Part shown: piece after piece, positions 13,498-38,759 of the stretch | How positions within the stretch are numbered: position 1 is the first letter of the stretch | Layout: each line of letters opens with the position of its first letter | IMG/VR virus record: IMGVR_UViG_3300020179_000005 | Span: 124,001 to 188,000 of that record | Length of the DNA stretch: 64,000 bases | Direction: 5' to 3' (one strand) | Notes under the pieces: model-generated | Seen by the model: the letters and a program-made list of their open reading frames with translations, nothing else | What the model was told of the DNA's origin: nothing | The model's database searches: none | Translations under genes and position numbers: made by a program

Positions 13498-13550
13498 TTT
13501 ATGACTAGCCATCCGGCTTGTCATCACCAACTACCTGAGGAGGTAGCGCA

Positions 13551-14714: not shown

Positions 14715-15464
14715 ATGAATAACAAAATCCGAATAATCGAATCAATCAAGGAAGACCTACGCAGGGCCGGACATTCCCTTAGTGATTATCAGGCGGCTTG
14801 GAAGATGTTGCTAGATTCTGTCAAAGTCGAGGGTAATGACAGCAAGTTCAAGGTCATCAAGGTAGAGACCGAAAACAACAAGAAGATGTTTCCGCTTTTC
14901 TTGCACGACACCCTTACTGGCACAATTGACGAAGAAGAATGTTATCTTCACAACGAACTTAGCAGGTTTGAATTTGATATGACTCAAGGGTTTGTGGCTA
15001 ACGAACACGCTTACTTGTTTGCCTATGGAGAAAGCTTGATCGTTCAAGTGATTATTCGTTTTATGAGCTTTATCGGCGACAACTTTATATTTGATGATGA
15101 TGCGACAAAGTCTGGAAATCGAATCGGAGACTTTACTGCACTTGCGTGGGATTACAATAGCTACAAATACATGGTCGATCCACAAACTTATGGATCATCG
15201 CAAGACATTAATAAGGGCGGTCTTAAAGAGTTTTTCTTTCTTGATGACTCTCGTCATGGCTGGGGTCGCCAGAGTGGACTAGAAGTTCTTGCAGATGTAT
15301 TTGATGGTCATCCAGTTATTGAATCTATCTTGCAGACGAACATGCCAACTTTGTATGGCTACAAGCCTCACAATCCAAGGAATCCTTGGGACGTGTTAAT
15401 CGAGAAGCTAGACGAATACAACAAACAACTAATCGAACGAAACAACAAAAAGGAGAATCAATAA
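14715..15464 (+). CDS. Hypothetical protein
   Basis: 249 aa, AAGGAGG RBS. Confidence 0.7.
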   Translation: MNNKIRIIESIKEDLRRAGHSLSDYQAAWKMLLDSVKVEGNDSKFKVIKVETENNKKMFPLFLHDTLTGTIDEEECYLHNELSRFEFDMTQGFVANEHAYLFAYGESLIVQVIIRFMSFIGDNFIFDDDATKSGNRIGDFTALAWDYNSYKYMVDPQTYGSSQDINKGGLKEFFFLDDSRHGWGRQSGLEVLADVFDGHPVIESILQTNMPTLYGYKPHNPRNPWDVLIEKLDEYNKQLIERNNKKENQ

Positions 15465-16177
15465 TGACTAATTCACCAATGCCCAACCCAACACGCTTGG
15501 AGGCTATGCAACCAGTCTGGAACAATCTCCTAGGAGATGCGGTCTTGGTTGACATGAATAACAACAAGATTGAGTTGAAGCTCAATGAATTCAATCACGA
15601 CAAGAAGTTCTTCAAGATCAATGTCGTGGATGAAATCAAGGGTGAACAACATCTGATGGTTCCGTGTCCGATTGCCCTTGTTGAATACAATGGCGTTGAG
15701 TATCATCATAACTACTTACTTCTGTGGGGTGAATCTGCAGTTGTTCAGGTTAGGATAAATTACAGGACCAACTTTCATCCTGAATATCCTGATCACATCT
15801 GGTCGATTGATCCTTCACCGGAGACTGACTTCATGGCTTGGCTATGGAAATCAGATGCGTACGCTGCGGATGTCAAGGTTTTGTGGAACAATCGAAACCC
15901 TGAAGACAATTGCCAAGACTTTAGCCCAGATGGTCGTTTCAAGCTCATTAATTATAACGATCACTTTGAGCTTCACGAAAGGCTCTCAGGCAACTGGGTG
16001 TGGGTAGACGAATTTGTTCTCAATACGACTTTCTTGCTCGCGGATGTGTTGCTTATTCCGACACATGCTGATATGTGGAGTTGGCTTGTTTGGAGGGTAA
16101 ACACCGAGACCGACTTGTCCAATCCGGACAGCTACTTTAATACGAAGTATCACTACAACAAAAGGGAGAATCAATAA
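15464..16177 (+). CDS. Hypothetical protein, apparent paralogue of the preceding gene
   Basis: AGGAG RBS; shared segments YLFAYGESLIVQV / YLLLWGESAVVQV, DFTALAW / DFMAWLW, VLADVF / LLADVL, KKENQ / KRENQ. Confidence 0.7.
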   Translation: MTNSPMPNPTRLEAMQPVWNNLLGDAVLVDMNNNKIELKLNEFNHDKKFFKINVVDEIKGEQHLMVPCPIALVEYNGVEYHHNYLLLWGESAVVQVRINYRTNFHPEYPDHIWSIDPSPETDFMAWLWKSDAYAADVKVLWNNRNPEDNCQDFSPDGRFKLINYNDHFELHERLSGNWVWVDEFVLNTTFLLADVLLIPTHADMWSWLVWRVNTETDLSNPDSYFNTKYHYNKRENQ

Positions 16178-16485
16178 TGCGTAAGCAGAGCAGAAGAACA
16201 CTTCCGAGGTGCAATGCACAGATATGGCCGAAGAAGAAATACAAACTGAAGAACGGTTTGGAAAGAACACCTGCCATACCCGGTCAACCGAATAATCAGC
16301 GGTGCACCAGGTCAATTAGGTGTCCTCACCACAAGAATCGTAATTCAGAATGCCCAGTAATTGAAGAGGTGGGCAAGACAGTATTCCTTTCCTGGGAACA
16401 GGTCAAGGAATTAATCAACAATGGTCACAGAGAAGTGACTGGAAGAAACTACTACGAGGACAGAAAGGAGAGCAGCAATGCCTAA
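16177..16485 (+). CDS. Basic hypothetical protein with Cys/His cluster
   Basis: TAATG coupling; RCNA…RCTR..RCPHH. Confidence 0.6.
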   Translation: MRKQSRRTLPRCNAQIWPKKKYKLKNGLERTPAIPGQPNNQRCTRSIRCPHHKNRNSECPVIEEVGKTVFLSWEQVKELINNGHREVTGRNYYEDRKESSNA

Positions 16486-16645
16486 TACGCCACTAGCGGG
16501 AGAAAAGTACGGTTGTGCAAAACAACGCAGAGTCGTACATTTCGCAGTGACACTTGAACAATACGAAAGTATTGAAGATGACGCCATGATGGCAAACATG
16601 ACGGTATCTGAATACATTCGTTTCAAGTTGGAATTGAATAAATAA
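16478..16645 (+). CDS. Small ribbon-helix-helix-like DNA-binding protein
   Basis: 55 aa read by hand: RVVHFAVTLEQYESIEDDAMMANMTVSEYIRFKL; AAGGAG RBS. Confidence 0.55.
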   Translation: MPNTPLAGEKYGCAKQRRVVHFAVTLEQYESIEDDAMMANMTVSEYIRFKLELNK

Positions 16646-16697
16646 CTAATAAAAGATTGGGGGATGGCCCTTACCCTCTGGGGGCCATCCCTTTTTC

Positions 16698-16830
16698 TTT
16701 ATTGCTAGCCATCCGGTTTCTTGCTACCGGGTGGTTGGCTCTTCGTAGAGGAGATGCGTGCTGCTCTCCTCTGCGCTCCTTTGCCAGAGATGAGTACATT
16801 ACTAGTAAATCCAGTTTTTTTTATGACTAG
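16698..16830 (+). repeat. ~135-bp non-coding two-hairpin unit (second copy ~17136-17271)
   Basis: Both copies lie between two motif copies; stem GGAGA/TCTCC in one versus GGGGA/TCCCC in the other. Confidence 0.7.
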
Positions 16831-16873
16831 GAATATGGTTTCTTAGTTAAGGGTCTTAGGAGGGCCCAGAACA

Positions 16874-17086
16874 ATGAAGGACTTATTCGATTTATTTGAG
16901 GAAGAATTTGATCTCAGATTGCAATGGATAGAAATGCTGGGTAGGCAGCGGATTCTTTGGAATAGTCAGGGAAGAGGAAGAAACGATGAAGTGGACAAAG
17001 AATTTCGTAGGGTTTGCGATGAGTGCTGCAGGATTGGCATCTTGTTGGCAAGGAAGCAGACTGAATTAGAGGAATTTCAACTCTAA
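16874..17086 (+). CDS. Hypothetical protein
   Basis: AGGAGG RBS in a shared leader. Confidence 0.6.
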   Translation: MKDLFDLFEEEFDLRLQWIEMLGRQRILWNSQGRGRNDEVDKEFRRVCDECCRIGILLARKQTELEEFQL

Positions 17087-17335
17087 TTCATGTGTAAGGA
17101 AAGGATGAGTACATTACTAGTAAATTCATTTTTTCTTTATGGCTAGCCATCCGGTTTCTTGCTTTCCGGTGGTTGGCTCTTCTGAGAGGGGATGCGTTCG
17201 GCTCCCCTTTATGCTTTTCTTTGCCAGGGATGAGTACATAACTAGTAAATCCAGTTTTTTTTTATGGCTAGAGTAAAGGTCTCTGGCTAGGCAGCTCTAC
17301 TGCGCCTAAAAGATAGTAGAGGGAAGGAGCTGCTC

Positions 17336-17662
17336 ATGGCTGGCTACAGTAAGCCAGAAATGAAGCAGTGGCTTTTTGACTTGGTTCTGGAAGGTAATAA
17401 AACGCTTCCAGACTGGCAAGTTGAGATCGACACAAGTGTGTGGGCAGCCTGCACACCAGAAGGTTTCTCCTTGCAGCTCAAGCGAACCGTTGGGGATTAC
17501 TACAAAGTGATCCACCTAGGCGTTATTCGCTGGGATCAGTTGGAGACTGCAATGAGGTTTTCGTGGGTCGACCGCGAACTCGGTGTAGTAAAGCCACCCG
17601 AAGAGGTTATCAACTGGATGTTACTGGCCAGTTCAGATGCCTCCGACGATTCGGTTGAATAA
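17336..17662 (+). CDS. Hypothetical protein
   Basis: AAGGAG RBS. Confidence 0.65.
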   Translation: MAGYSKPEMKQWLFDLVLEGNKTLPDWQVEIDTSVWAACTPEGFSLQLKRTVGDYYKVIHLGVIRWDQLETAMRFSWVDRELGVVKPPEEVINWMLLASSDASDDSVE

Positions 17663-17720
17663 ACCGATTTCGTTGTGATTATGATGGCGATCACCATATC
17701 GCCTGACCAAGAGAAGAAAG

Positions 17721-17741
17721 AGGGGCTTCGGCCCCTTTTTC
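17721..17741 (+). terminator. Intrinsic terminator AGGGGC-TTCG-GCCCCT plus T tract (also ~18058, ~19890, ~24753)
   Basis: GC stem with a C(UUCG)G tetraloop followed by Ts. Confidence 0.85.
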
Positions 17742-17799
17742 TTTATGGCTAGTATTTAGGTCTCTAATCTGAGATCGCTAGTCAAGAAAGGAAAACCCA

Positions 17800-18003
17800 A
17801 TGGCACGGAAGAAGTCGGCCACCACGCAGAACCCAAAGCGTCGGCGTGGCTTGACTGGCGCTGGGTACATCAACACGTTTGAGTACCTGCCGCAGATGGA
17901 AGCCGTTCATCCGAGGAACGGCTACGGTCTGCGTGCTCCTTGGGAGTATCGCCGTAACTGGCGGCGCTTCCACAAGAACAGCAAGCCGAAAGGGAAGAAG
18001 TAA
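17800..18003 (+). CDS. Small basic hypothetical protein
   Basis: AAAGGA RBS; ends NSKPKGKK, like 19579..19851 (NSKPKGKR). Confidence 0.6.
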   Translation: MARKKSATTQNPKRRRGLTGAGYINTFEYLPQMEAVHPRNGYGLRAPWEYRRNWRRFHKNSKPKGKK

Positions 18004-18183
18004 TTCTTCCATGACACATGATGGCGATCACCATGTCGCCTGACCAAGAGAAGAAGAAGGGGCTTCGGCCCCTTTTTCTTTATGACTAGGACTTAGGTCT
18101 CTAGTTATCGTGCCAGGTATGAGCGACACACCTAATCAACAAGTGTCGCACCTTTCCCGAAAGGGAGAAAGGGGGTATCCATC

Positions 18184-18654
18184 ATGGATACTTTCCTGGT
18201 AGTAATGGCAACGCTCTTCTTGGGCGTTGTGACCCTGGTTTCGGTGATCAATGCCGAAGCCATCAACAAGCACTGGAATCTCGCAATGGAGGCGTACGCA
18301 GATCTTGCGTATTCTTTCCAGGAGTTCTGGTGGACAAGCATCAGGCCTGAAATCAGGGGTCTGATGGGCAAAAAGAACCCAGTCTGGGAACCGCCAACGG
18401 CACTTGGGTACTACTTTGGGGATATCGTCAAGCTTGACGACTCTGAGAAGTGGTACATGGTGTTGTCCAGCGGTATCTGGATGATTTCAGTGAGCTCACC
18501 GCTACTCGTCCATGAGTGCGATGACACACTGAAAGTCGTTCAGGCCAAAGGCTGGAAGTACGTGTACAACAACGAAAAAGTCGTTGAACACGTACCCGCA
18601 GATGCCGTAGAGGCATTTCTCGACAGAATGATCGAGGAGAAGATCTACGGCTGA
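18184..18654 (+). CDS. Hypothetical protein with N-terminal TM segment
   Basis: 156 aa between motif and terminator. Confidence 0.65.
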   Translation: MDTFLVVMATLFLGVVTLVSVINAEAINKHWNLAMEAYADLAYSFQEFWWTSIRPEIRGLMGKKNPVWEPPTALGYYFGDIVKLDDSEKWYMVLSSGIWMISVSSPLLVHECDDTLKVVQAKGWKYVYNNEKVVEHVPADAVEAFLDRMIEEKIYG

Positions 18655-18803
18655 ATGTAAGTAGTTGATTGGCACGAGTCAACTACCTACAGAAGAATTA
18701 GGGTGGTCCCTTACCCTCTGGGGGACCACCCTTTTTCTTTATGACTAGTTTTTAGGTTACCAAAGGTGGCCGCTAGTCAAGGGTCTTAGGAGGGCCCACA
18801 ACA

Positions 18804-19445
18804 ATGGAAGCAATGTTCATCATGCTCATGGAGTTCATGAGCAAAGTCATGAATGCTGTGGAGACACGGCATCATGACGGAAAGCGTACGAAAGGCGAAG
18901 GCTCCGGCATTCATTCTTTCGTTTCGCTTGTACGATGGATCAATCAGAACAAAGGCTTGGTCAAGGCAGCAATTGCCAATGACAGAGAAATGTTCGAGTT
19001 GATCATGAAGCAGGCAAGTCAAACGTTGAAGACATACATCAGAACCGGTGTGTGGAACACGGTGTACTGGGTTACCTCATTCGATGGTTACTTCTACCGC
19101 CACCTGTTCGTCGACGACGACACACGCTACAAAATCAATCCGAAAGTTCACTTCGTGTGGACTCCTCGGAATGGACAAAGCATGACCAAGGACGAAGACA
19201 ATCGTCTTTTTGGTAAAATAAGAAACGTTGCAAACAGTCTGGATAAGGCTGGATACGACGTGTTTTGCTATGACATCGAGTGGGAACCAATCACACTAAA
19301 CATTGGAGACGGCGCGGAAAAACGCGTCAAATACAGCTGTGGAAATGTGTTTGAGCTTCTCGAAGAGTTCCTCGACCGGCCAAGCCAAGAAATCAGTAAA
19401 CTGGTTTGGCAAGCAAAAATGGAAGACAAACTCCAGCACGAATAA
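18804..19445 (+). CDS. Hypothetical protein
   Basis: 213 aa, AGGAGG RBS. Confidence 0.7.
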   Translation: MEAMFIMLMEFMSKVMNAVETRHHDGKRTKGEGSGIHSFVSLVRWINQNKGLVKAAIANDREMFELIMKQASQTLKTYIRTGVWNTVYWVTSFDGYFYRHLFVDDDTRYKINPKVHFVWTPRNGQSMTKDEDNRLFGKIRNVANSLDKAGYDVFCYDIEWEPITLNIGDGAEKRVKYSCGNVFELLEEFLDRPSQEISKLVWQAKMEDKLQHE

Positions 19446-19578
19446 ATGAATAAATAAAGACTGAGGGTGGTTCGGGAAATCCGGCCACCCTCTTTCTTTA
19501 TGGCTAGGAATTAGGTCTGTAGTTTTAGACCGTTAGCTTTTGTGTGTGTATGTGTCAATCAAGTACCAGGAGGTACTC

Positions 19579-19851
19579 ATGTCAATACACGAAATGAACG
19601 ACGACTTCCTCGACAGGATGTTTCTCTTGCAGGAACGCCTGGAAAAGGATGATCGTCAAGGAAACAAAATCCACAAGCGACGAGGTACACACTTCGTCAG
19701 GTACTGGTATTTCCCAAACGAGGACCTGTTCATCGTTGGGAAGTGTGAATCAATGGGCAAAGTGGTGAACACCTGGAGTAAGGAAACAACGTTTCTTCTT
19801 TCCAGCGAACCACCACGCAAAAGCAATAGCAAGCCGAAAGGCAAGCGATAA
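19579..19851 (+). CDS. Hypothetical protein
   Basis: AGGAGG RBS before ATG 19579. Confidence 0.65.
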   Translation: MSIHEMNDDFLDRMFLLQERLEKDDRQGNKIHKRRGTHFVRYWYFPNEDLFIVGKCESMGKVVNTWSKETTFLLSSEPPRKSNSKPKGKR

Positions 19852-19964
19852 CAACCAACACACACACACACACAAATGAAATAAGGGAGAGGGGCTTCGG
19901 CCCCTCTTTCTTTATGACTAGGAATATGGTTTCCTGGTCAAGGGTCCAAGGAGGGCCCAAAATA

Positions 19965-20858
19965 ATGAAAAGCATTAACGACATGGAAATGAAGCGACAG
20001 AAATTGACACAACTATGCCAAGAGGTCACAAGTGATGTAATTAAGAAACATGGTTCCCTACGTAATCAATGTGGCCATGGAGCGTCTGAGCTCAGGAAAC
20101 GGGCAAGGAAATCGGGAATTAAGCTCAATCTTCAGGGTGGCTTATTTAATTATGGCACTGAGCACAACTGGTGTGTTGACCCAGAAACAAACGAGATATA
20201 CGATCCAACTGCAGAGCAGTTCATTATTGGAATCAATGGCCTACAGAATGAAGAGACCTCCAAGCTCTACTTGTCATTGAACGATGATGAAATATCTGAT
20301 TTGCAATCTCTTGCCAGGAGCAAGGGATTTATTTGGAGCTTCAGTGAGGGTGTTTCGCAAATCGTCTTTGGCTACCAAGTAAGTATCGCAAATCAGAAAA
20401 TAGTTGACAAGTTTCGGTTTTACTATCCAGACTTGACTCATGTTGTTGTTCGCAACACAAAGGATGAAGTACGGAAAGCAAAGAATGGTAACACCTATGC
20501 TGTTATCAGAAACAATGTTGTTGAGTTTCATATCGATAAAATGAACGTCAAGAAATGGAAGAATGACTTAAACGTAACAGGTCCTGAAGTGGTGAGTTAC
20601 ATTGTGTTCAAGAATCCGAACAACAGCTATTGGATCAGGGTTGTTGAACAAAGGCTGTTTGTTTCAAAGAATGGAAAGACTGGTGTTATAACCAAACTTG
20701 GTGAAGAATTGAAGAACATCAAGATCAATAAGAAAGGCAAGCTTTACAGGACAATAAAGATCGAAGACGGATGTTTTGTGAATGAAATGATTGATCAGCA
20801 TTACTTTTTGCTAATCAAGAGATTTGAAGAACTTACATCACGTAATAGTGATCAATAA
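19965..20858 (+). CDS. Protein with N-terminal transglutaminase/papain-like Cys-His-Asp domain
   Basis: NQCGHGA…EHNWCVD…IYDPTAEQF pattern. Confidence 0.6.
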   Translation: MKSINDMEMKRQKLTQLCQEVTSDVIKKHGSLRNQCGHGASELRKRARKSGIKLNLQGGLFNYGTEHNWCVDPETNEIYDPTAEQFIIGINGLQNEETSKLYLSLNDDEISDLQSLARSKGFIWSFSEGVSQIVFGYQVSIANQKIVDKFRFYYPDLTHVVVRNTKDEVRKAKNGNTYAVIRNNVVEFHIDKMNVKKWKNDLNVTGPEVVSYIVFKNPNNSYWIRVVEQRLFVSKNGKTGVITKLGEELKNIKINKKGKLYRTIKIEDGCFVNEMIDQHYFLLIKRFEELTSRNSDQ

Positions 20859-20973
20859 ATATTCTTTAGCCGATTGATATACAACTAGTAAATTTAACTA
20901 CATTATTAATCTTTTATTTTTATGACTAGTCATCCGACTTAGTCATCAAACCAAAAATGGGGAGGATAAACCC

Positions 20974-23016
20974 ATGAAAGCAATAAGGTGGATTAACAGG
21001 TTCCAAGACAACTCGTTTCAAGAGATCGAAGTTGATCTAGACAATCTGAAAGCAAAGAACACTTATCAGTTAGTAGAAATCATGCGTCAACTCAACATAA
21101 TCGAGAACAAGCTAGAAACAGGTATTGGTATTGTTGTTGATGAAAACGACCAAAAAGTGGCCGATTGGTTCACTTTCCCAAATCTCAAAGTCTTGATTTA
21201 TGATGAGATTGATGAGTTGGCTGCTAATGAACAAAATGCTGCTCGTGAATCAAAGAACATGATCAGCGGGTACAGGTTTCGGAAATTTGGAACAACGGAA
21301 GTTGGAAAGAACCTTTGGCCAGAGTCACGGTATTATTTAGCACAGATCGTCAATGCTGAGACCGGTGAAGTAGATAAGAACATGTTGGGACAATGGGGTT
21401 ACACCAAGCATGACTGGGGTCAGTGGATATGGGGCCTAGAAGTTAATCTCAATAAGAGAAAGAATGGCAAGGGGTGGACAATTCATTGTTCTTTAAGTGC
21501 GACTTATTACAACAACTATGAATCAATATCAGATGAAAGAAGCAAGAATTATGACCCCCTTTATGTCAAGCTCACAAACGCACTTGAAACAGCGGGAATT
21601 AAAATGAAGCACAAGAAAACGTGCACGACTTTCTTTCAACCAATGAAAGAAATGATCTTTGTCAATGAAACTAAGGTTGGAGTACGTTGCTTGACCACAA
21701 AAGTCGATAAAAATGGATTCAAACCATTGTGGGGGCAATCTCTTTCTCAGCAATTGAAATTCAAGTTTCTACAGGGTGAAGTACAGATTTTGGTCAATGA
21801 TGCGTATCGTTGTCTAGAAAAGGTATACAAGAAGACAGACATTTTGCCAATTTGTGAAAACCTGTCATTTGACAGAATTTTCCCAGACGAATACAATAGT
21901 TTGAGCTACCCCATGCCGACTCAACTGTATGGAATAACTCAAGATCAGTTGCGTTATCTTTCTGGTGCCAAAAACATTCACCAAGCATTAAATAATGCTT
22001 TTGGTACTCCTGTAGAGAAAATGGGCAAAGAAGAATCACGGTATATCTTTCTTGAGATTCCTATCAAAGAAAATTCTGGAATTACAAGAAGAGCATTTGG
22101 TGGGCAACAACAATTCAAGCATTGGCACCATTTGTGCTCGGCCATTCAAATGGTCAGAATGTTCAAAGCATTTGGACTTAATTTCTTTGAACAAATGAAG
22201 ATTGATTTTGTTCTGCCACCAATACCTGTAATGCACAAGGTTGAAAGACTTGGAGGCGATCAGAATTATGCGATATACCCAATAAGAACAGGGTCTAATC
22301 CGGGGAATTACCGTATATACAATGACATACAGAACATGCAAAAGTACTTCAAGACCTTTGGTGCAACAACTGCATACAAGAATCAAATCTTGCAGACTTT
22401 TACATGGGACGAAACTGATACAAAGAAGCTGGAAGAGCTCGCAAAAGAACCACATCGCACCCACGCCACCGCAGCGTGTGAGCGTCAGAATCAGATCTAT
22501 CATCTATTAAATCAAGTTGCTGACACTCTTTCTTCATTGAAGAAAATTCCTGTTGGAAATCGCAGAAAAGCGGTTATTGAACAGGTAAAGAGGCAGAAGT
22601 ATGACTTTGATCAAACTCACGATTACGTAGTTACAGAAGCAATGAAATACAAGAATGAAGCCAGGCCAACGAAAAATACCAGGTTGATCAATTCGTTCGA
22701 TGGCAAAGAAATCATTGATGGAGTAATCTTCAGGGCTCCTAAGACCACGCATGATCTTTACCTGTGGGGTACACAACAGAACAACTGCATCGGAACTTCT
22801 TGGGCAGAAGTTGTTGCCGACAGATATCAATTCATCGTTGGCTTTGAATATGCAGATACGGGTAAGTGGATTGGACATGCAAGGTTCGTACTCCTTGATT
22901 CCGGCAAAGAGCTTGAAATTCAAGAGTTTCGAGGTAAGGGTGAAGAGCCACGAGAAGATCTACGTAAAGAGCTTGTCAAGTGGATGAAGAGCAATTTGGT
23001 AAAGAAGGAAAACTAA
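20974..23016 (+). CDS. 680-aa protein with C-terminal PcfJ-like domain
   Basis: FRAPKTTHDLYLWGTQQNNCIG…IQEFRGK resembles the PcfJ motif. Confidence 0.6.
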   Translation: MKAIRWINRFQDNSFQEIEVDLDNLKAKNTYQLVEIMRQLNIIENKLETGIGIVVDENDQKVADWFTFPNLKVLIYDEIDELAANEQNAARESKNMISGYRFRKFGTTEVGKNLWPESRYYLAQIVNAETGEVDKNMLGQWGYTKHDWGQWIWGLEVNLNKRKNGKGWTIHCSLSATYYNNYESISDERSKNYDPLYVKLTNALETAGIKMKHKKTCTTFFQPMKEMIFVNETKVGVRCLTTKVDKNGFKPLWGQSLSQQLKFKFLQGEVQILVNDAYRCLEKVYKKTDILPICENLSFDRIFPDEYNSLSYPMPTQLYGITQDQLRYLSGAKNIHQALNNAFGTPVEKMGKEESRYIFLEIPIKENSGITRRAFGGQQQFKHWHHLCSAIQMVRMFKAFGLNFFEQMKIDFVLPPIPVMHKVERLGGDQNYAIYPIRTGSNPGNYRIYNDIQNMQKYFKTFGATTAYKNQILQTFTWDETDTKKLEELAKEPHRTHATAACERQNQIYHLLNQVADTLSSLKKIPVGNRRKAVIEQVKRQKYDFDQTHDYVVTEAMKYKNEARPTKNTRLINSFDGKEIIDGVIFRAPKTTHDLYLWGTQQNNCIGTSWAEVVADRYQFIVGFEYADTGKWIGHARFVLLDSGKELEIQEFRGKGEEPREDLRKELVKWMKSNLVKKEN

Positions 23017-23132
23017 TAAATATTCTTTAGCCGACTGATATAAGACTAGTATATTTAACTACATTACTAGTCTTTTTTTTTATGACTAGGAATATGGTTT
23101 CCTAGTCAAGGGTCTTAGGAGGGCCCAAAACA

Positions 23133-23672
23133 ATGAAAGCAAACCGCTACTACATCGCTGGGACTGGCTCTCGTGAGCTGATTCTGGATGTTGACAAGCG
23201 TCGTGAGGTCCGTGATTATCTTGCGGACCTTCTGACAAAGGCAAAGGAAAAGCATGGTGACAAGTTGATTGTCATCAGCGGAATGGCAGAAGGCTTTGAT
23301 GAAGCACTTGCTCGTGCTGCAATCATGGCTGATGTGTCGTTTATCGCGGCAATTCCCAGCCCTGATTACATTGAGTACTACTGGGGTAAAACCAGTATGC
23401 TCAGGCGTAACAGAATGAGTGAAGCACAGGAAATCCTGTCAAAGGCACAAGAAATCGTTTACGTGTGCCCATCAAGCCCAAGCAAACGTGGCAATGGCGT
23501 TAAGTATCCGCAAAACGGTGGTGCAAACATCGACCGAAACGAGTGGATGGTCGACCATGCAAACATTGTCTGGGTGTACAATCCAACTACTCCAGGTACC
23601 GCTAGGTGCTATGCCTACCTCAAGAAGGTTGGCAAGCCCGCATTTATCATTGACACCACTAAAAAGCTTTAA
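23133..23672 (+). CDS. SLOG-superfamily (YspA/DUF1273-like) nucleotide-binding protein
   Basis: IAGTGSR, VISGMAEGFD, AAIP, RNEWMVD, GT..C motifs. Confidence 0.75.
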   Translation: MKANRYYIAGTGSRELILDVDKRREVRDYLADLLTKAKEKHGDKLIVISGMAEGFDEALARAAIMADVSFIAAIPSPDYIEYYWGKTSMLRRNRMSEAQEILSKAQEIVYVCPSSPSKRGNGVKYPQNGGANIDRNEWMVDHANIVWVYNPTTPGTARCYAYLKKVGKPAFIIDTTKKL

Positions 23673-23795
23673 CCAGCTAATTGGTTGGTAATAAGGGATC
23701 TATATATGGCTAGTAAATTTAACTATATTACTAGTCTTTTATTTTTTATGGTTAGCCATCCGGCTACCAAAATCAACAATGGGGAGGAAAAACCC

Positions 23796-24227
23796 ATGAG
23801 TAAGCGGTTTGATCAAGAAATACAGAAGGCAATACAGAAGGGTTACGTTGAAGGACTGACCATCAAGTGCGAGCGATGTGCTGGCACTGGATTGTGGCCA
23901 ACCATCGAAGATCCGGAAGGCTTGCACCACAAGTGCTTTCGGTGCGATGGAACTGGACAAGTTCAGATAATGAGCATCGCGCAAGTTGCACTCATCAGGA
24001 AACTGATGTATGTGGACCAAGTTATTGCCAGGGAGTCCGCTTTCGGAGGCACTACCGCGCAATGGTCACGTATCGAATACAAGATGGCTGGCCATTTGGC
24101 TGGCATGCCCTATCTGTCAATGGCAGAAGGCAGAAAAATCATTGGTGAACTGATGAACTCGAAGAAGACCAAGGAAAAAGAAAGCCTTGATCAATGCGAG
24201 ATCGACTTCGGTCACATCTACGAATAA
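23796..24227 (+). CDS. Protein with DnaJ-type zinc-finger repeats
   Basis: CERCAGTG and CFRCDGTG. Confidence 0.7.
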   Translation: MSKRFDQEIQKAIQKGYVEGLTIKCERCAGTGLWPTIEDPEGLHHKCFRCDGTGQVQIMSIAQVALIRKLMYVDQVIARESAFGGTTAQWSRIEYKMAGHLAGMPYLSMAEGRKIIGELMNSKKTKEKESLDQCEIDFGHIYE

Positions 24228-24372
24228 CAAGGCAAGCAAGAAAAGAAGAAGGGGTCCAAAAGGGCCCCTTTTTCTTTATGACTAGTACTTAGACTTCAAG
24301 TATCAGTCAGGGTTGAAGTGTCGTTTCCCAAATCAAAAATGACGCAATGTACATCCATACAAGGAGGATGAC

Positions 24373-24690
24373 ATGAACAAGCAAATCAAGTGCGGTGCCT
24401 GCGGGCATACGCACCCGACCGTGGCAGAGGTATTCAGCTGCCACAACACACTGGGGGTTTTCAAACTCCAGGAAGCGGATGAACTGGCGAAAGACATGCC
24501 AAAGCGCCAGTTCGTCAAGACTCCAAAGGCACAGGAGCCCAAGACCTACCAGGTCCATGTGTTCCCGACCAAGGAGGGCGCCGAGGCATTCATTGCCAAA
24601 ACGCCAAAGACCCGACTCGGAACGACGAAAGTCAAGTACGTGGACGGACAGCCCGAGAAGACCTATCAGGTCATCGAGAGCTTGAAGTAA
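24373..24690 (+). CDS. Hypothetical protein with N-terminal CxxCxxxH..C zinc site
   Basis: AAGGAGG RBS; KCGACGHTH…SC. Confidence 0.65.
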   Translation: MNKQIKCGACGHTHPTVAEVFSCHNTLGVFKLQEADELAKDMPKRQFVKTPKAQEPKTYQVHVFPTKEGAEAFIAKTPKTRLGTTKVKYVDGQPEKTYQVIESLK

Positions 24691-24838
24691 TAACCTAGCA
24701 GGGGAAAGAAGTCACCCCTGCAAACCAAGAGTCGGGTTCAGCCGACAGTAGAAGGGGCTTCGGCCCCTTTTACTTTATGACTAGTACTTAGGTCTCTATT
24801 CTGAGGCCGCTAGTAGCTCAAGAGAAAGGAAACTCATC

Positions 24839-27481
24839 ATGAGCGCAATCAACCAAGCGGTGAAGGGCGAAATCCCGATCATCGCATTCCTGTCAGGAAA
24901 GTGGCGAATCCTGACCAACAATCCCAGGGCACACGAAAAGTCTGCTCTGGAACTGTTCAGGGATACCAAAGAGCCAATCCAAGTCCAGACACGGACTCCA
25001 CAAGGTAGGACAATTTCCAACTACCTGATGGAAATCCACAATGGAACCTGGATCTACCCTGCGTTGAGCAAGTTGAACAAAAGAGGATTCACATTCCGAC
25101 TTGGTTCAATCTCAATCAGTGACCTAAAGCATGAAATCAAGTTGAAGAGGACCAATATCGACCTGTTGGTTGATGGATCCACTTTTGCTTGGGCAAATGC
25201 GACCTATGCATTCTTCCTTTACATCGATGGAATGGATCGTGAGATCTTCAGCCTCGAGGCAATGGACATGATTGCACTGGATGCAAAGAAGACACCAAAG
25301 CGACTGCAAGAAGTTGGTCGTTCATGCCAGATGTACAAGTCTGGTAAGTTCGACGAACTGAGCTGCTTGATGTTGGTGGACCCCAGCAATGAAATCCCAG
25401 AAGCTGAACATGATCACGGACCGGGTAACTGGCCTGCTGCTCGTGAAGAAGTCACCCTGGAGATGAGCCCTGATGGCAATAATTGCAATCCGTACGACGG
25501 ACCAATCATTGTCAGTCAGAGCTTCTTGCGGGAGATGTGCTACAAGATGGAAGAAGGTCATGAAAAGCGCCGTATGATTGCAATGATCATGGGCAACAAG
25601 ATTGACCGGTTCATCTTCCGACTGAGGACTCCGTACGGACTCGTAAAGGGTTTGGGTTTGTGCAGGCCTGACAGGGTGATGTCTCATGATGTCATCTTCC
25701 ACAGCAGTGCAATCAAGCCGGAGTTCCATTCGGATGGCAACAACTATCTGGCAACGGCGTTCATTCACGAGAACATCCACACGGCGATGTGGGACATGCA
25801 GAGCACGTTCCACAATCACGATTGGTTGTTCACCGAAGAGCGTTTCGTTCAGGACTCAGAGTCATTGGTGGATGACATCACCAAATCGTTCGCAGACAAC
25901 AAAGTGCCGGACTTCATCTTGCACCAAGTAAAGTTTGCTCATGACGAAGCTGGTGTGCACCACGAAGAACCTGTAGTGGCTGGTTGGAAGACCGCTGTTG
26001 TCAGGTGGCTTGAGGCAGGGAATGATCTGTCTGCTTCTGCTTGCTTTAACAGGCTGGCGATTGGTTCTGTAGAAATGCAGATGCAATCAGCACGAGACAA
26101 CAACCGTTGGTGGCTGCCAATGAGCAATGCATTCATGGCAACCGTCAACACCTATGCTGCCTTGGAGCACATGGCGATGATGGACCTTCCGGAAGAGAAG
26201 CGCAATTGTGTCTTCTATCTGGAGAATGTTGGTGTGGTAATTCCCACCGACAGGTTCGTTGATACCGCTGTGTTGCATGACACATGGGATCAAGACGGTG
26301 ATCAAGCCAAGTTCATCTGGATCAAAATCTGGTGCAGCCAGTATGGTCGAGAGAAACTGGAGAAGCTGTATTCGGACTCGGTACTGCCAGTCAACATGAT
26401 TGTGCCAGAGACACCGGAGGAAGCCATCGACGTCTGCGTAGTGATTCGTTCACCAAACGGACCAGGTGGGTACAGCATTGAGTGGTTTGATGCAGAGACC
26501 ATGCCATGGCACAGGCGTAATGACGAGCGGGTTCCGGTCATCGACTTGAACACTGCTCCATTCGGCATGTCGACTTTGCTGGAGACCTCTGAGCGAGGAG
26601 AGATTCCTCATTCAGTGGAGTACACCAGCAGGATGATCACACGAGACAACGTCAAACGGATGATCAGGGCACAGTTGGTAAATCCCAACGTAGGTACGTA
26701 TGCCAACTTGATCATGGCTTACTCTGCAATCATGGGAGTGAGCTATCCTGAGTGGCTGCCGGCAAACAGCAACGATGTGATCGACACCAATCAACAGGAG
26801 GCGGACATCGATTCCTTCCTCTACCTGAAGTTTGGAATGTTGCACATGCAAAAGTTGATCGTGAATGAAATCATTCGCGAACAGGTGCCTGTTGACAAGT
26901 TCGTGTTCAAGACACGTCTGTCGATTGGCATGGACGAAACAGATCAGGACATGCTTGAGGACATTCTGGTGGATGGCAAATTCACCCGTATGGACAATGT
27001 GAACAAGCACACCCTGGATCAAGTCAAGAAGATGATCGTTGAAGTTTCATTCGGTCGTCGTCTGGAATCTGAAACTCGTCAGTTGGTCATGGACAAATTG
27101 TCGATAGTCAAGCCGGAACACGTCGAATGGGCAAGTGGACTCTTCAAGGAGTTCGATGTGCGCCTCAAGCGTGCAGATGCAAAGTACCACTCCTCAGTGG
27201 CCAAGGCCGGTAAACTCGGGTTCAACAGCAAGTATCTCAAGATGTTTGCCGAAACCGAGCGCAGCAGGGAAATTGGCGATATTCAATCGGACCTGTACAA
27301 CAGGATCAATTCACACACAGCACCAGAAAAGTGGGCTGTACTGCTGTACCGGTACATCGTGGATCCGAGCCTGAACTCTGGCAAGTACGGTCTCAGTGAC
27401 CGGATCATCTTCCAGAATGGCCAGGAAGGACAACCCACGGTCATGGACCTGTTGATCCAAGGTTTGGCTGACCTCAAGTAA
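24839..27481 (+). CDS. Single-chain two-barrel RNA polymerase, YonO/cellular-RdRP-like (paralogue 1)
   Basis: Motifs YDGPIIVS, FRLRTPYGLVKG, WDQDGD (DxDGD), IRSPNG, NVGTYAN, DVID. Confidence 0.75.
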   Translation: MSAINQAVKGEIPIIAFLSGKWRILTNNPRAHEKSALELFRDTKEPIQVQTRTPQGRTISNYLMEIHNGTWIYPALSKLNKRGFTFRLGSISISDLKHEIKLKRTNIDLLVDGSTFAWANATYAFFLYIDGMDREIFSLEAMDMIALDAKKTPKRLQEVGRSCQMYKSGKFDELSCLMLVDPSNEIPEAEHDHGPGNWPAAREEVTLEMSPDGNNCNPYDGPIIVSQSFLREMCYKMEEGHEKRRMIAMIMGNKIDRFIFRLRTPYGLVKGLGLCRPDRVMSHDVIFHSSAIKPEFHSDGNNYLATAFIHENIHTAMWDMQSTFHNHDWLFTEERFVQDSESLVDDITKSFADNKVPDFILHQVKFAHDEAGVHHEEPVVAGWKTAVVRWLEAGNDLSASACFNRLAIGSVEMQMQSARDNNRWWLPMSNAFMATVNTYAALEHMAMMDLPEEKRNCVFYLENVGVVIPTDRFVDTAVLHDTWDQDGDQAKFIWIKIWCSQYGREKLEKLYSDSVLPVNMIVPETPEEAIDVCVVIRSPNGPGGYSIEWFDAETMPWHRRNDERVPVIDLNTAPFGMSTLLETSERGEIPHSVEYTSRMITRDNVKRMIRAQLVNPNVGTYANLIMAYSAIMGVSYPEWLPANSNDVIDTNQQEADIDSFLYLKFGMLHMQKLIVNEIIREQVPVDKFVFKTRLSIGMDETDQDMLEDILVDGKFTRMDNVNKHTLDQVKKMIVEVSFGRRLESETRQLVMDKLSIVKPEHVEWASGLFKEFDVRLKRADAKYHSSVAKAGKLGFNSKYLKMFAETERSREIGDIQSDLYNRINSHTAPEKWAVLLYRYIVDPSLNSGKYGLSDRIIFQNGQEGQPTVMDLLIQGLADLK

Positions 27482-36173: not shown

Positions 36174-38759
36174 ATGACATTGTCCTATCGACCAAGAGTT
36201 CGGCTCAACGCAGAAATATACGGTCCTTTGCGTAGCATGAACGATTACCAGTTCGGCTTCTATGACACAGGCTTTCTGCGTCAAGCCGTACAGGCACTTT
36301 CTGAGCAGCATTCTACGGAAAAACCTGTGTCGTTTAGAATGGCCACTCTACCAATACCTCAGACACCATCCGAATTACGGATAGCAGAAGCCATCGTTCG
36401 CCATCCACAGATTTCTTATGCAATCGTGGACAAGGACAAAATGGCCTTCGTTATCATCGAGGGGTGTCCAGGTTGGCTAGAGGCATTCAAGCGTCTTGGT
36501 TACGAAGTTTACGCCGGAGACAAGACTGCGAAACGACTCAAGACTTTTCACCGTCCTGCACTGTTGAACGCAACGTTTGCCAAGGACGAGTTGAACGTAA
36601 TGATCGTAGATCCCACTCAATATTCAGAATACAATTTCAATGATCCCGAAATGTTAGCTTCTTTGTCACAAGACTATCCCGGTGTAGATTTCAAGGACCC
36701 AAAAGTTCTTGCTCGCTTGTTGGACGGTGGTTTTGTCGTATCTTCAAAGTTGATACAGCGTGCTGTAGCCAACTTGCCGGTATACGAACCCTCAAAGACC
36801 ACCGACACCAAAGAGTATTATTACGATTGGCGGATTCGCAAGAAGCTGGTACGCAATCTCTTGAAGCAGAAAGTATACAATGCCCGCATCGTTTTCGATA
36901 AGGGTTTCCTCAAGGGTAATTGCATAGTTTCTGACAACCTACCTGAGGGAGTTGATATCATCACTTCCCAGGATAACATCAAGTCAGAAATCAAGTATGA
37001 AAACGGATTCAAATTCATTGCAGAGCCGCAAGGTTCCCACGAACGAGTAATCACCGACGACCAAACGCTCATCAACCTTCCAAATCTGTTTCGCCAGTCA
37101 GACATGGAGTTCTGGCTAGACGAAGAGTACAAGAAAATGTTTGATGATGCGGTCAACTGTCGTCTGCTTACGAACTGGCGTGAAATCTACAAACGACAGT
37201 TCCGTAACCTCGCAGACGCAGAAGACGAAGAGGCCAACTCTAGAATGTCGTACGTTGGTTACCGATGGGTATCCTCTGGAATGAAGATAACCGATTCACC
37301 TTGGCTCTTTGAAACATTGGCAACCAGCCACGCAAAACCATACCAGTCTCGGGTTCCCATTCCTTGTTCTGTCTACGAACAGGTGATACCAGAGTCGTTG
37401 GCACATATGGCTGGCTATGAGCTGAGCGTACAGGTGGAACAGGGTCAAATCATTCGTATCAACGAGATAGGCGTTCACGTCGTCAACGACGCTGATTGGC
37501 TCGAGATGTACGAGTCGCACGGCGGCCACGACGAGGACGATTATTTCAAGCTGTTCTACCGCACCATGGAAGGCGGGAAATTTGACGGACAAAAAGTCGT
37601 CATCGTATGCCGTTCACCAAACGGTATCGGTGAGTACTCGATCTTTCGGTATGTAGAGGGCCAATGGTCACCCACTTGGCACAAAGCAGATGGCACTCCG
37701 ATCAAGTTCCCCACCGTTTCCGGGCGCGGATGGCCAAAACGACTCAGTGAATGTATTCGTGATAAAGAAGTACGTTATACTGGATTTCCATCCGAACACG
37801 TTAAGAAGTCCAAGAAAACCGGCTTGTATACACAAGACGACGTCATTTCAGATATCAAAGTCGCCATGACCGGCGGCAATGTCGGAGGTTACGTCAATGC
37901 CGCAATGGTTCATTCTTTGATCATTCACAAACATCGTCCAGTCCAACTTTGTTCTATGGAAAAGGCAATTGACAAGTGCATCAACCCCGACTTTGCAGAG
38001 GATGTACTTGCGATTGACGAAGAAGCCAAGAAGATCGTCAGAGAGATCATCGATTCCGCACAACCAATAGACACGAATGTTTGGCTGAAACGAGGTTTCA
38101 AACGTTATCTGAAGGACGGAGAAGAGATCGTACTGCACGACGGTAAGATAACACAAATGAATCTACTTTGTTCACAAAAGTATTCGGAGTATTGCCAGAA
38201 AGTACGCAATTGGGCGCAGCTAAACGCTAAGCCACCGCAGATCGTACATGATCTCGCCCAACGCCTCTACTTTCAGGCACTTTCCACGGTAAAGGACTTT
38301 CGTAGCAAGATCTATCAGGTCAATATTTCTGAAACCACGCAATCAACTGGCAACATAGTCAGAGGATCATGGGAGTCAATGTACACTGAGATTGTTAATA
38401 TCATTAATTCTTTCCAGCGTATAGAAGACAAGCATGATTTTGTGTTGTCCATGTATTCGGTTTCTTTGAACGTTCCCACATCTGCAGGTAAGGTTACGGA
38501 TCAGATCGTAATGAATCGATTCGTTTATCCTTATTTGGAGTCTGCATTACAGTTTTACGGTATTGCAAGCACCGTCTTTTTCACCCCGAAAGCGGACGGC
38601 GATGTGGACGTAAACACGTTCAAGAGCGACAAATGGCAGTACGACAAGCACATCTATCACGACCCGATGTCTTTCCAAGAAGCACATCGTCAGGACACGG
38701 AAGTTGTGTTCACACCCACGATCAAGTTCACCAGAACTTCCAGCGTATCAAGATATTAA
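36174..38759 (+). CDS. Single-chain two-barrel RNA polymerase-like protein (paralogue 2), variant catalytic loop GGHDEDD
   Basis: LLDGGFVVS, NARIVFDKGFLKG, HGGHDEDDY, VCRSPNG, NVGGYVN, KAID, collinear with 24839..27481. Confidence 0.7.
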   Translation: MTLSYRPRVRLNAEIYGPLRSMNDYQFGFYDTGFLRQAVQALSEQHSTEKPVSFRMATLPIPQTPSELRIAEAIVRHPQISYAIVDKDKMAFVIIEGCPGWLEAFKRLGYEVYAGDKTAKRLKTFHRPALLNATFAKDELNVMIVDPTQYSEYNFNDPEMLASLSQDYPGVDFKDPKVLARLLDGGFVVSSKLIQRAVANLPVYEPSKTTDTKEYYYDWRIRKKLVRNLLKQKVYNARIVFDKGFLKGNCIVSDNLPEGVDIITSQDNIKSEIKYENGFKFIAEPQGSHERVITDDQTLINLPNLFRQSDMEFWLDEEYKKMFDDAVNCRLLTNWREIYKRQFRNLADAEDEEANSRMSYVGYRWVSSGMKITDSPWLFETLATSHAKPYQSRVPIPCSVYEQVIPESLAHMAGYELSVQVEQGQIIRINEIGVHVVNDADWLEMYESHGGHDEDDYFKLFYRTMEGGKFDGQKVVIVCRSPNGIGEYSIFRYVEGQWSPTWHKADGTPIKFPTVSGRGWPKRLSECIRDKEVRYTGFPSEHVKKSKKTGLYTQDDVISDIKVAMTGGNVGGYVNAAMVHSLIIHKHRPVQLCSMEKAIDKCINPDFAEDVLAIDEEAKKIVREIIDSAQPIDTNVWLKRGFKRYLKDGEEIVLHDGKITQMNLLCSQKYSEYCQKVRNWAQLNAKPPQIVHDLAQRLYFQALSTVKDFRSKIYQVNISETTQSTGNIVRGSWESMYTEIVNIINSFQRIEDKHDFVLSMYSVSLNVPTSAGKVTDQIVMNRFVYPYLESALQFYGIASTVFFTPKADGDVDVNTFKSDKWQYDKHIYHDPMSFQEAHRQDTEVVFTPTIKFTRTSSVSRY

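Follow-up and report, generated by a model that had tools for sequence, protein, structure and literature searches.

Paralogous predicted two-barrel RNA polymerases of an uncultivated phage with the R-x-P loop placed after the acidic loop

We found that a 210-kb uncultivated phage encodes two paralogous proteins, predicted to be single-chain "two-barrel" RNA polymerases, which belong to a large unannotated family. In this family the R-x-P loop follows the metal-binding acidic loop instead of preceding it, and D-x-D-D, not D-x-D-G-D, is the usual metal motif. Secondary-structure order and covariation, rather than inspected coordinates, suggest that the catalytic barrel is rewired, and we read both proteins as probably active enzymes. 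The two genes lie in the analysed window, a 64,000-nucleotide stretch of IMG/VR record IMGVR_UViG_3300020179_000005 (positions 124,001 to 188,000), and all coordinates below are those of the window:

24839..27481 (+), paralogue 1, predicted 880-aa single-chain two-barrel RNA polymerase of the long-spacer clade, D-x-D-G-D type
36174..38759 (+), paralogue 2, predicted 861-aa single-chain two-barrel RNA polymerase of the short-spacer clade, D-x-D-D type

First, we examined the motifs that had been noticed in a sequence-only reading, which claimed that the acidic loop of paralogue 2 is one residue shorter than that of paralogue 1 and lacks Gly, and that RSPNG lies after this loop in both proteins. 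Both claims were confirmed. Paralogue 2 reads H449-G-G-H-D453-E-D455-D456-Y, followed by R480-S-P-N-G (nt 37611-37625), and paralogue 1 reads H480-D-T-W-D484-Q-D486-G-D488-Q, followed by R537-S-P-N-G (nt 26447-26461), with RSPNG 24-49 residues after the loop. BLASTP showed that the two proteins are homologous (E 6e-11 over about 200 aa), and hhalign between the two family alignments gave a probability of 99.65% and E 4e-25 over 531 columns, aligning DEDD- with DQDGD and RSPNG with RSPNG. In 32 homologues of paralogue 2, H449, G450, G451, D453, D455, D456, R480, S481, P482 and N483 were invariant, and in 34 homologues of paralogue 1, H480, D481, D484, D486, G487, D488, R537, S538, P539 and N540 were invariant, indicating that the motifs are not chance. 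We also confirmed the canonical order in known enzymes: YonO has LRSPHLF about 45 aa before DNDGD, P23-45 gp64 has NRRPDLP about 35 aa before DYDGD, E. coli beta-prime has RAPTLH at 425 and NADFDGD at 458, and QDE-1 has R962/P964 before D1007-D1011 (PMC2919709; PMC9508822). The features of the two proteins that are considered below are as follows:

36522..36554 (+), paralogue 2, K117-T-A-K120-R121-L...R127 helix just before the first barrel, probably the duplex-binding (DPBB1 auxiliary) helix
36723..36917 (+), paralogue 2, first-barrel (DPBB-B) catalytic residues D184-G185, R238 and K247-G248
37350..37652 (+), paralogue 2, catalytic barrel (DPBB-A), residues 393-493, with strands X 399-406, Y1 425-429 and Y2 434-437, helix 439-448, the acidic loop, strands Z 457-466 and U 474-479, RSPNG, and strand V 488-493; the proposed equivalents are beta1, beta2, beta5, alpha2, loop, beta6, beta3, R-x-P and beta4 (an inferred assignment)
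37518..37544 (+), paralogue 2, acidic (metal) loop H449-GGH-D453-E-D455-D456-Y
37611..37634 (+), paralogue 2, R480-S-P-N-G-I-G-E487, the putative Pro-gate (R-x-P) loop, followed by the carboxylate that covaries with loop position 450
37872..37973 (+), paralogue 2, bridge-helix-like segment G567-I583 and the E596-K-A-I-D600 segment (a trigger-loop-like "A-V/I-D")
25496..25651 (+), paralogue 1, first-barrel residues D220-G221, R261 and K270-G271
26276..26305 (+), paralogue 1, acidic loop H480-D481-T-W-D484-Q-D486-G-D488-Q
26447..26470 (+), paralogue 1, R537-S-P-N-G-P-G-G544 loop, with Gly where paralogue 2 has E487

To place the two proteins, we searched for known relatives by sequence and by structure. 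Neither protein matched a Pfam family even at E<=1, a PHROGs scan gave nothing usable, and HMM searches of PDB sequences with both family profiles gave only noise. A tblastn search of 50,697 cultured or deposited phage genomes with both paralogues and two distant family members found no match, the only hits being to an unrelated N-terminal domain of P0253. However, a profile search identified 501 clusters of this family at 50% identity, supporting the inference in the sequence-only reading that it is a distinct family. We found no paper describing this family or a permuted barrel in the literature library that was searched. The AlphaFold2 models (pLDDT 85.8 for paralogue 1 and 85.7 for paralogue 2) were then compared with known structures, and for both models the top 17-21 PDB matches were all two-barrel polymerases. 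Paralogue 1 matched RDR2 (Foldseek E 8e-8, VIA Z 11.8), QDE-1 (E 4e-7, Z 9.6) and gp64 (Z 8.7), while paralogue 2 matched QDE-1 (E 1e-9, Z 9.9), RDR2 (Z 11.7) and gp64 (Z 9.1). Generic DPBB domains aligned to residues 160-312 of the paralogue 1 model, and the AFDB hits were RdRPs.

We next studied conservation across 150 family representatives at 50% identity. D-x-D-D occurred in 138 and D-x-D-G-D in 6, indicating that paralogue 2 is the typical member and paralogue 1 the derived one, the reverse of the polarity assumed in the sequence-only reading. In the acidic loop D453 and D455 were conserved in 144/144 and D456 in 138/144. Paralogue 2 does not carry the D-x-D-x-D triad of the superfamily but three conserved Asp with the third one residue closer. 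In the first barrel D184 was conserved in 133/134, R238 in 121/133 and K247 in 139/139. These residues correspond by position to QDE-1 D709, R738 and K743 (PMC2919709), an Asp and basic pair represented in Rpb2 by D837, K979 and K987, and the equivalents in paralogue 1 (D220, R261 and K270) are invariant in alignment A2. R480 and P482 were conserved in 139/139 and D600 in 141/141. This inventory matches the eight residues said to be universal in two-barrel RNAPs (PMC2919709). Outside the two barrels, K120 was conserved in 133/133 and R121 in 131/133, on a helix (118-125 in the model) whose position matches the QDE-1 D1AH helix 664-678 (PMC9508822), and G571 and N575 of the bridge-helix-like segment were conserved in 140/141 and 135/141. 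The equivalence of the first helix to D1AH, and that of the 596-600 segment to the QDE-1 trigger-loop D1116 (PMC9508822), are inferences.

Remarkably, the downstream R-x-P is the only invariant one. It lies after the acidic loop in 296/296 sequences, at a median of 31 aa after the start of the loop. In contrast, the upstream candidate position 393 is R in only 44/144 (W in 36, F in 13 and K in 12) and is W in paralogue 1, although paralogue 2 and about a third of the family do have an R-x-P about 58 aa upstream of the loop (R393-V-P395). In both models only helices lie between the first barrel and strand X, which opens the catalytic barrel (pLDDT 85-96 over residues 393-493 of paralogue 2). 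These results support the proposal of a permuted barrel in the sequence-only reading, but the change is not a circular permutation: a half-swap, with the Asp-loop half first, was rejected because only one strand separates the Asp-loop strand from R-S-P, not a full beta-beta-alpha-beta unit. The best fit is transposition of the beta3-RxP-beta4 hairpin to after beta6. The strand order is deduced from DSSP strings, loop lengths and covariation, with a canonical DPBB ring order that was only partly cross-checked, and the strand-by-strand topology remains inferred.

To examine this topology by covariation, we performed mfDCA. The analysis of the large region 110-600 was too noisy because gap-rich columns dominate, and smaller regions were therefore used. 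The Z-U, U-V and Y1-Y2 hairpins and the X-Z (antiparallel) and X-Y2 (parallel) pairings ranked 1, 2, 3, 6 and 7 of 15 strand pairs. Y1-V ranked 4, but its predicted parallel orientation was not resolved (antiparallel 3.13 against parallel 2.37). Residue 456 paired with residue 480, and the acidic loop and the RSPNG loop were each other's strongest inter-segment coupling. The same method recovered the canonical pairing orientations in the first barrel. This support is weak, however, since Neff was only about 186 and individual ladder scores reached only p 0.02-0.09 against random segments. The top coupling was between residue 450 in the acidic loop and residue 487 next to RSPNG, which occur as G/E or D/G. 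D at position 450 arose three times, and in all 14 such sequences E487 is lost, suggesting that RSPNG lies beside the active site, although the covariation is dominated by one deep split and only three independent events support it. Positions 451, 446, 450 and 487 also coupled with 596. In profile-profile alignments of the whole core and of separate segments against YonO, gp64 and beta-prime, no significant alignment was obtained. The one suggestive result was that the best local hit of the U-RSP-V segment in the 839-aa YonO profile was YonO's own ILRSPHLFREHGV (E 0.043).

Based on the above results, the explanation that we favour, with moderate confidence, is that both genes encode active single-chain two-barrel (double-psi beta-barrel) RNA polymerases of a large phage-borne family related in fold to QDE-1/RDR cellular RdRPs and Thermus-phage gp64/gp96. 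The first barrel is canonical. In the catalytic barrel the connector helices would be followed by beta1 (X), a long psi-loop, beta2 and beta5 as a tight hairpin, helix alpha2, the acidic loop and beta6, and only then by a hairpin that occupies the places of beta3 and beta4, with the invariant R-S-P at its tip. The Arg/Pro "Pro-gate" would thus sit beside the last Asp of the metal loop, as in other two-barrel polymerases, but reach that place from the C-terminal side. The normal metal loop of the family is H-G-x-x-D-x-D-D, with a Glu seven residues after the Arg, whereas a minority, including paralogue 1, has H-D-x-x-D-x-D-G-D with Gly at that position, so that four carboxylates would surround the site in either form. 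Catalytic activity and DNA-templated transcription are inferred.

We considered whether the barrel instead keeps the canonical connectivity, with the upstream R/W-x-P (R393-V-P395 in paralogue 2, W425-L-P427 in paralogue 1) as the true Pro-gate and RSPNG as a lineage-specific hairpin that follows beta6 and merely packs near the active site. In line with this, E. coli beta-prime has SPANGEP at 492, 30 residues after its DFDGD motif and separated from it by a helix, as in paralogue 1 (helix 501-512), an upstream R-x-P 50-59 aa before the loop occurs in 130 of 296 sequences, P395 is conserved in 119/144, and the Foldseek and VIA alignments to QDE-1 are collinear over nearly the full length. However, the poor conservation of the upstream Arg contrasts with the Arg and Pro that are stated to be invariant in all two-barrel RNAPs (PMC2919709), three barrel strands would be missing before strand X in the models, and the register of the Z-U hairpin puts R480 opposite D456, where the canonical beta3 Arg sits. 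Moreover, beta-prime has Leu, not Arg, before its S-P, and hhalign gave no signal to beta-prime at all. We therefore regard this reading as unlikely, though not negligible.

The sequence-only reading had left open whether paralogue 2 is a variant active enzyme or an inactive partner subunit. The latter might be suggested by the lack of D-x-D-G-D spacing, by the dimeric QDE-1 (PMC9508822), and by the constant co-occurrence of the two genes, 9-12 kb apart, in the closest relatives. We consider it very unlikely, because a dead enzyme would not keep D453, D455, D456, R480, P482, D184 and K247, D-x-D-D is the majority state, four related phage genomes (G006-G009) carry two D-x-D-D copies and no D-x-D-G-D one, and the two genes appear to sit in different promoter classes. 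It is also possible, but improbable, that the proteins are polymerases without being the phage's transcriptases, acting as RNA-dependent RNA polymerases or making some other nucleotide polymer (for example in counter-defence or priming) while host RNAP transcribes the phage. The nearest solved folds, RDR2 and QDE-1, are indeed RNA-dependent, template preference cannot be read from sequence, and some paralogue 1 orthologues are fused to, or sit next to, a NADAR domain. On the other hand, the other phage members of this fold clade that have been tested (YonO, gp64, gp96, crAss gp66) are DNA-dependent transcriptases (PMC5467207; PMC10770324), searches found no beta/beta-prime, T7-like or PF05183 gene in the genome, the genome carries a conserved, non-sigma70-like promoter-type motif with terminator-like hairpins, and two copies per genome parallels virion and non-virion RNAP pairs.

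We further compared the proteins with the closest known systems. QDE-1 and RDR2 (PF05183) are the best structural matches over nearly the whole chain and share the order of N-terminal domain, auxiliary helix, first barrel, helical connector, catalytic barrel, bridge helix and A-V-D segment (the auxiliary helix, bridge helix and A-V-D segment of the phage proteins being inferred), as well as the first-barrel Asp plus basic pair, the Asp loop and an R-S-P loop. In the phage proteins, however, R-S-P comes after the Asp loop, about 80-100 extra conserved residues lie between the Asp-loop strand and the bridge helix, and a PF05183 search of the whole genome at E<=10 found nothing, while the same search gave a signal, below the cut-off, in the Bacillus subtilis control genome. 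Thermus phage P23-45 gp64 (non-virion) and gp96 (virion, tape-measure-fused) and P74-26 gp62 are phage single-chain two-barrel RNAPs (VIA Z 8.6-9.1 for gp64/gp62 and 7.0 for gp96), and the two paralogous RNAPs in one phage arose by duplication and act on different promoter classes (PMC10770324). The 616-aa gp64 is much smaller, has the canonical order and shows no detectable sequence similarity, and neither window paralogue is fused to a tape-measure protein. YonO of Bacillus prophage SPbeta is a single-chain phage DNA-dependent two-barrel RNAP of similar size with an R-S-P loop in the canonical order; its family is picked up by PF05183 in part, and hhalign of A2 against YonO gave a probability of 0.3%, and of the core profile against an 18-sequence YonO alignment 0.2%. 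The crAss-like phage phi14:2 gp66 virion RNAP matched weakly (Foldseek E 2e-3, VIA Z 4.8) and has an Asp loop lacking Gly (DFDID), showing that D-x-D-G-D is not obligatory (10.1101/2020.03.07.982082), but it is 2,180 aa and virion-packaged, and keeps D-x-D-x-D spacing and the canonical barrel order according to a structure-based alignment (PMC10770324). The beta-prime/Rpb1 catalytic barrel has the same eight-residue inventory, basic residues just before beta1 (GKRVDYSGRS), like the KK/R-x-W/R-x-P-M-S-N-A stretch here, and an S-P-x-x-G hairpin after the Asp loop. Its two barrels lie on separate subunits, R-A-P precedes DFDGD by 33 residues, and it matches PF00623, which the genome lacks.

If the rewiring is real, the catalytic barrel would have a connectivity not described for any two-barrel polymerase, with the Pro-gate hairpin transposed from before beta5 to after beta6, alpha1 lost, only one psi-loop remaining, and a fourth carboxylate able to sit either in the loop or beside the Pro-gate. 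It would also define an ancient, widespread phage RNAP lineage that always comes as a pair. We consider this reading about as likely as not. The order R-x-P ... D-x-D-G-D and the barrel connectivity are treated as universal from bacterial RNAP to Pol II, RNAi polymerases and archaeal PolD, and anchor scenarios for the origin of transcription. A large natural family with the same active-site geometry but a different strand order and a D-x-D-D loop would show how far this core can be rewired, would explain why profile methods miss these enzymes, and would add hundreds of unannotated jumbo-phage genes to the list of phage transcriptases.

Every informative relative carries two paralogues (two each in the related genomes G001-G003 and G006-G009), and the window's own genome has exactly two. 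We asked whether the two genes differ in their regulatory context. We identified the following block:

12936..24784 (+), 15 copies of the promoter-like motif TTTATG(A/G)CTAG, most preceded by a GC hairpin plus T-run, the last copy (24774-24784) lying 54 nt upstream of the paralogue 1 start codon

At <=1 mismatch, 16 matches were found against 1.5 expected, and 0/100 shuffles reached that number. These are the only copies in the 209.7-kb genome, and 14 are intergenic. Terminator-like hairpins were also more frequent than expected (31 against 11.7). Paralogue 1 is the last gene of the block marked by the TTTATGACTAG element, whereas paralogue 2 is not in that block. The two enzymes most likely serve different temporal gene classes, as virion and non-virion RNAP pairs do elsewhere, although this division of labour is inferred. 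Moreover, the motif is conserved upstream of paralogue 1 orthologues that are 33-43% identical.

We first examined the two polymerase genes and their motifs in the window, bases 124001-188000 of a 209,701-bp viral record with direct terminal repeats. The features are as follows (positions are those of the window):

36174-38759 (+), paralogue 2, an ORF of 861 aa reading ...YESHGGHDEDDYFKLFYRT...VVIVCRSPNGIGEYSIF...
37518-37544 (+), the acidic loop of paralogue 2
37611-37625 (+), RSPNG of paralogue 2
24839-27481 (+), paralogue 1, an ORF of 880 aa reading ...AVLHDTWDQDGDQAKFIWI...CVVIRSPNGPGGYSIEW...

BLASTP between the two proteins gave an E value of 6e-11, and hhalign between alignments of their homologues gave a probability of 99.65% and an E value of 4e-25 over 531 columns, aligning DEDD- with DQDGD and RSPNG with RSPNG, indicating that the two proteins are paralogues. 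In 32 homologues of paralogue 2 and 34 homologues of paralogue 1, the His, every Asp of the loop, and R-S-P-N are invariant. Therefore, the sequence-only reading, which had described a shorter acidic loop lacking Gly in paralogue 2 and an R-x-P motif lying after the acidic loop in both proteins, is correct, and the arrangement is under strong selection.

To identify the proteins, we searched both sequences against known families. Neither protein matched any Pfam family, the only PHROG hit was one marginal match of unknown function, and profiles of both families found nothing among PDB sequences. AlphaFold2 models built on the homologue alignments were confident (pLDDT 85.7 and 85.8, pTM 0.83 and 0.85), and their significant matches in the PDB were exclusively two-barrel polymerases. 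Foldseek matched QDE-1 (E 1e-9), maize and Arabidopsis RDR2, Thermus-phage gp62/gp64 and gp96, and crAss-phage gp66, while the VIA Z-scores were 11.7-11.8 for RDR2, 9.6-9.9 for QDE-1, 8.6-9.1 for gp64/gp62 and 7.0 for gp96. Similarly, AlphaFold DB clusters and the ESM Atlas gave the same neighbourhood of RdRP-named proteins and unnamed viral proteins. The genome holds exactly these two copies, and no beta, beta-prime, T7-like or PF05183 gene was found in it.

We then searched a joint profile of both families against 1.84 billion cluster representatives, and found 501 clusters at E<=1e-3 and 401 at E<=1e-10. None carries a name, and tblastn found none in deposited phage genomes; a Microbacterium phage of 191,968 bp matched only the unrelated N-terminal domain of P0253, a distant family member. 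Among the 150 best representatives, the acidic loop is D-x-D-D in 138 and D-x-D-G-D in 6, while the other 6 are fragments lacking the loop. On a midpoint-rooted tree the family splits into a short-spacer clade, with 18-35 residues between the loop and R-x-P, to which paralogue 2 belongs, and a long-spacer clade, with 43-63 residues and an inserted helix, to which paralogue 1 belongs. Parsimony puts D-x-D-D at the root, with D-x-D-G-D gained twice, one gain being the paralogue 1 clade. Within this family the 'non-canonical' loop of paralogue 2 is therefore the rule, and paralogue 1 is the exception. Several distant family members of 1,370-1,670 aa (P0227, P0234, P0256, P0253 and P0297) carry N-terminal extensions of 500-750 residues ahead of the polymerase core, and in P0253 the first ~90-100 residues of this extension resemble small proteins in many cultured jumbo phages, at one locus a DUF4326 domain protein. 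These fusions might mark virion-delivered versions. Moreover, some paralogue 1 orthologues (P0123 and P0124) carry an added NADAR domain (PF08719), and in another relative, on the contig of P0186, a separate NADAR gene lies just downstream of the polymerase gene, a recurring link between the polymerase and an ADP-ribose-processing domain that is unexplained.

Eight residues have been listed as invariant in all two-barrel RNAPs by Ruprich-Robert and Thuriaux (PMC2919709), namely the Asp triad, one Asp and two basic residues of the other barrel, and the Arg and Pro of an R-x-P. In QDE-1 that R-x-P is the 'Pro-gate' loop, in which R962 binds the 2'-OH of the incoming NTP and of the 3' end, and P964 senses the minor groove (PMC9508822). 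Across the 150 representatives (paralogue 2 numbering), we found D184 in 133/134, R238 in 121/133, K247 in 139/139, D453 and D455 in 144/144, D456 in 138/144, and R480 and P482 in 139/139. The only other R-x-P near the loop is R393-V-P395, about 58 residues upstream. However, it is not conserved, as position 393 is R44/W36/F13/K12 and is Trp in paralogue 1, and that stretch looks more like the basic residues that precede beta1 in beta-prime (GKRVDYSGRS). The functional Pro-gate is therefore most likely the downstream RSPNG, which lies after the loop in 296 of 296 family members, whereas in YonO, gp64, beta-prime and QDE-1 (PMC2919709) it lies before the loop.

The sequence-only reading had inferred a permuted barrel, and we deduced the strand order, without model coordinates, from DSSP strings, loop lengths and covariation. 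The models place only helices between the end of the first barrel and strand X (399-406 in paralogue 2, 427-438 in paralogue 1). Strand X is followed, in paralogue 2 numbering, by an 18-residue connection, a tight hairpin Y1-Y2 (425-429 / 434-437), a helix (439-448), the acidic loop, strand Z (457-466), strand U (474-479), RSPNG and strand V (488-493). The canonical barrel probably has the ring order beta1-beta5-beta2-beta4-beta3-beta6, in which the Asp loop enters beta6 and the R-x-P lies at the beta3-beta4 turn opposite the last Asp. If this ring order is taken as correct, and given that Z follows helix plus loop (so Z = beta6) and that Z-U, U-V and Y1-Y2 are hairpins, only one assignment fills the ring: X = beta1, Y1 = beta2, Y2 = beta5, Z = beta6, U = beta3 and V = beta4.

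To test this assignment, we performed mean-field DCA on 312 aligned family members, although the depth is modest (Neff 186). The six predicted neighbour pairs rank 1, 2, 3, 4, 6 and 7 of 15, and the three pairs that are not trivial hairpins rank 1, 3 and 4 of 12. Residue 456 couples with 480 and residue 457 with 479, and X-U and Z-V score as parallel second neighbours, as expected, while one predicted orientation, Y1-V parallel, is unresolved. As a control, the same procedure on the first barrel, which has the ordinary sequence order, recovered the expected orientation for all six neighbour pairs, including the hallmark parallel beta2-beta4 pair. The best reading is that the beta3-RxP-beta4 hairpin has been moved to after beta6 and alpha1 has been lost, a non-circular permutation that keeps the geometry of the site. 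A simple half-swap circular permutation does not fit, because only one strand separates Z from R-S-P.

We further studied whether RSPNG is likely to lie near the active site. The strongest coupling in the whole region is between position 450 (second residue of the loop) and position 487 (seventh residue after the Arg). The family shows either G450 with E487 (239 sequences) or D450 with G, A or S at 487 (64 sequences). On the tree, D450 arose three separate times, and in all 14 such representatives E487 is gone, while among the G450 representatives only 11 of 116 lack E487. At segment level, the acidic loop and the RSPNG loop are each other's best partners, and both also couple with the invariant WPxRLS helix (position 524) and the E596/D600 segment. 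These covariation results, in the absence of a direct view of adjacency in three dimensions, suggest that RSPNG is not far from the active site, and also that a fourth carboxylate is required and can come from either loop. An alternative is that RSPNG is merely an extra hairpin like SPANGEP of beta-prime and that the upstream R/W-x-P is the real gate. We consider this alternative unlikely but do not dismiss it. A further limit is that profile alignments to canonical families carry no significant signal.

The sequence-only reading had left open whether paralogue 2 is a variant active enzyme or an inactive partner subunit. Every catalytic position is invariant in the homologues of paralogue 2, and the D-x-D-D form dominates the family. 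Moreover, other near-complete phage genomes of 200-230 kb carry two family members that are both D-x-D-D, for example G006 (HGGWDLDDS plus HGGPDLDDF) and G007/G009 (HGGHDEDDF plus HGGWDLDDS). A dead partner subunit would not behave like this, and we therefore infer that paralogue 2 is an active enzyme. Two copies per genome hold in the window's own genome and in all seven informative relatives, and in the closest relatives the genes keep the same order and a 9-12 kb spacing.

Taken together, the proteins appear to work like, and are predicted to be folded like, single-chain two-barrel RNAPs of the QDE-1 / YonO / gp64 clade. However, they differ from the described families in that they give no PF05183 or YonO profile match, that most members have D-x-D-D instead of D-x-D-x-D, and that the R-x-P lies after rather than before the Asp loop. 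No paper describing this family or such a connectivity was found in our literature search.

We next examined the genomic context of the two genes. The whole genome contains 15 copies of TTTATG(A/G)CTAG, all on the + strand between window positions 12936 and 24784. Fourteen are intergenic and usually 30-90 nt before a start codon, and most are preceded by a strong GC hairpin and a T-run, forming terminator-promoter cassettes in front of small genes. The motif gave 16 matches at <=1 mismatch against 1.5 expected, and terminator-like sites numbered 31 against 11.7 expected, while sigma-70-like sites were not enriched. The last copy (24774-24784, +) lies 54 nt upstream of paralogue 1, and the motif recurs 6-7 times upstream of paralogue 1 orthologues that share only 33-43% protein identity. 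In contrast, paralogue 2 has no copy nearby. Its gene run (34956, 35713, 36174) follows one of seven co-oriented intergenic sites of the AT-rich motif TACTATATA, which has 10 copies genome-wide, including 34435-34443 (+) and 8689 (-) in the window; 7 of the 10 copies are in intergenic DNA, and all 7 are co-oriented with the next gene. This motif may be a second promoter class, but the signal is weaker and the statistics are weak. By analogy with P23-45, in which a virion RNAP transcribes a pre-early set that includes the gene of the second RNAP (PMC10770324), we propose that the two enzymes serve different temporal classes.

The ORF directly after paralogue 2 (38792-39718, +) matched PHROG 4285 'transposase' (E 2e-35) but no Pfam family, and it may be a mobile-element gene inserted next to the polymerase. 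In addition, there is a strand switch near 8.5-9.2 kb, between 1-8400 (-) and 9200-64000 (+), with a matching change in GC and AT skew. The leftward genes include a ClpX-like AAA ATPase (7182-8357) and a protein with a DNA-polymerase-exonuclease-like PHROG hit (2971-4572), while the rightward genes include RecA (9241-10203), an SNF2-type helicase (41915-43603), a subtilase (45026-46438), a JAB-domain protein (55317-57089) and an AAA ATPase (58237-59835).
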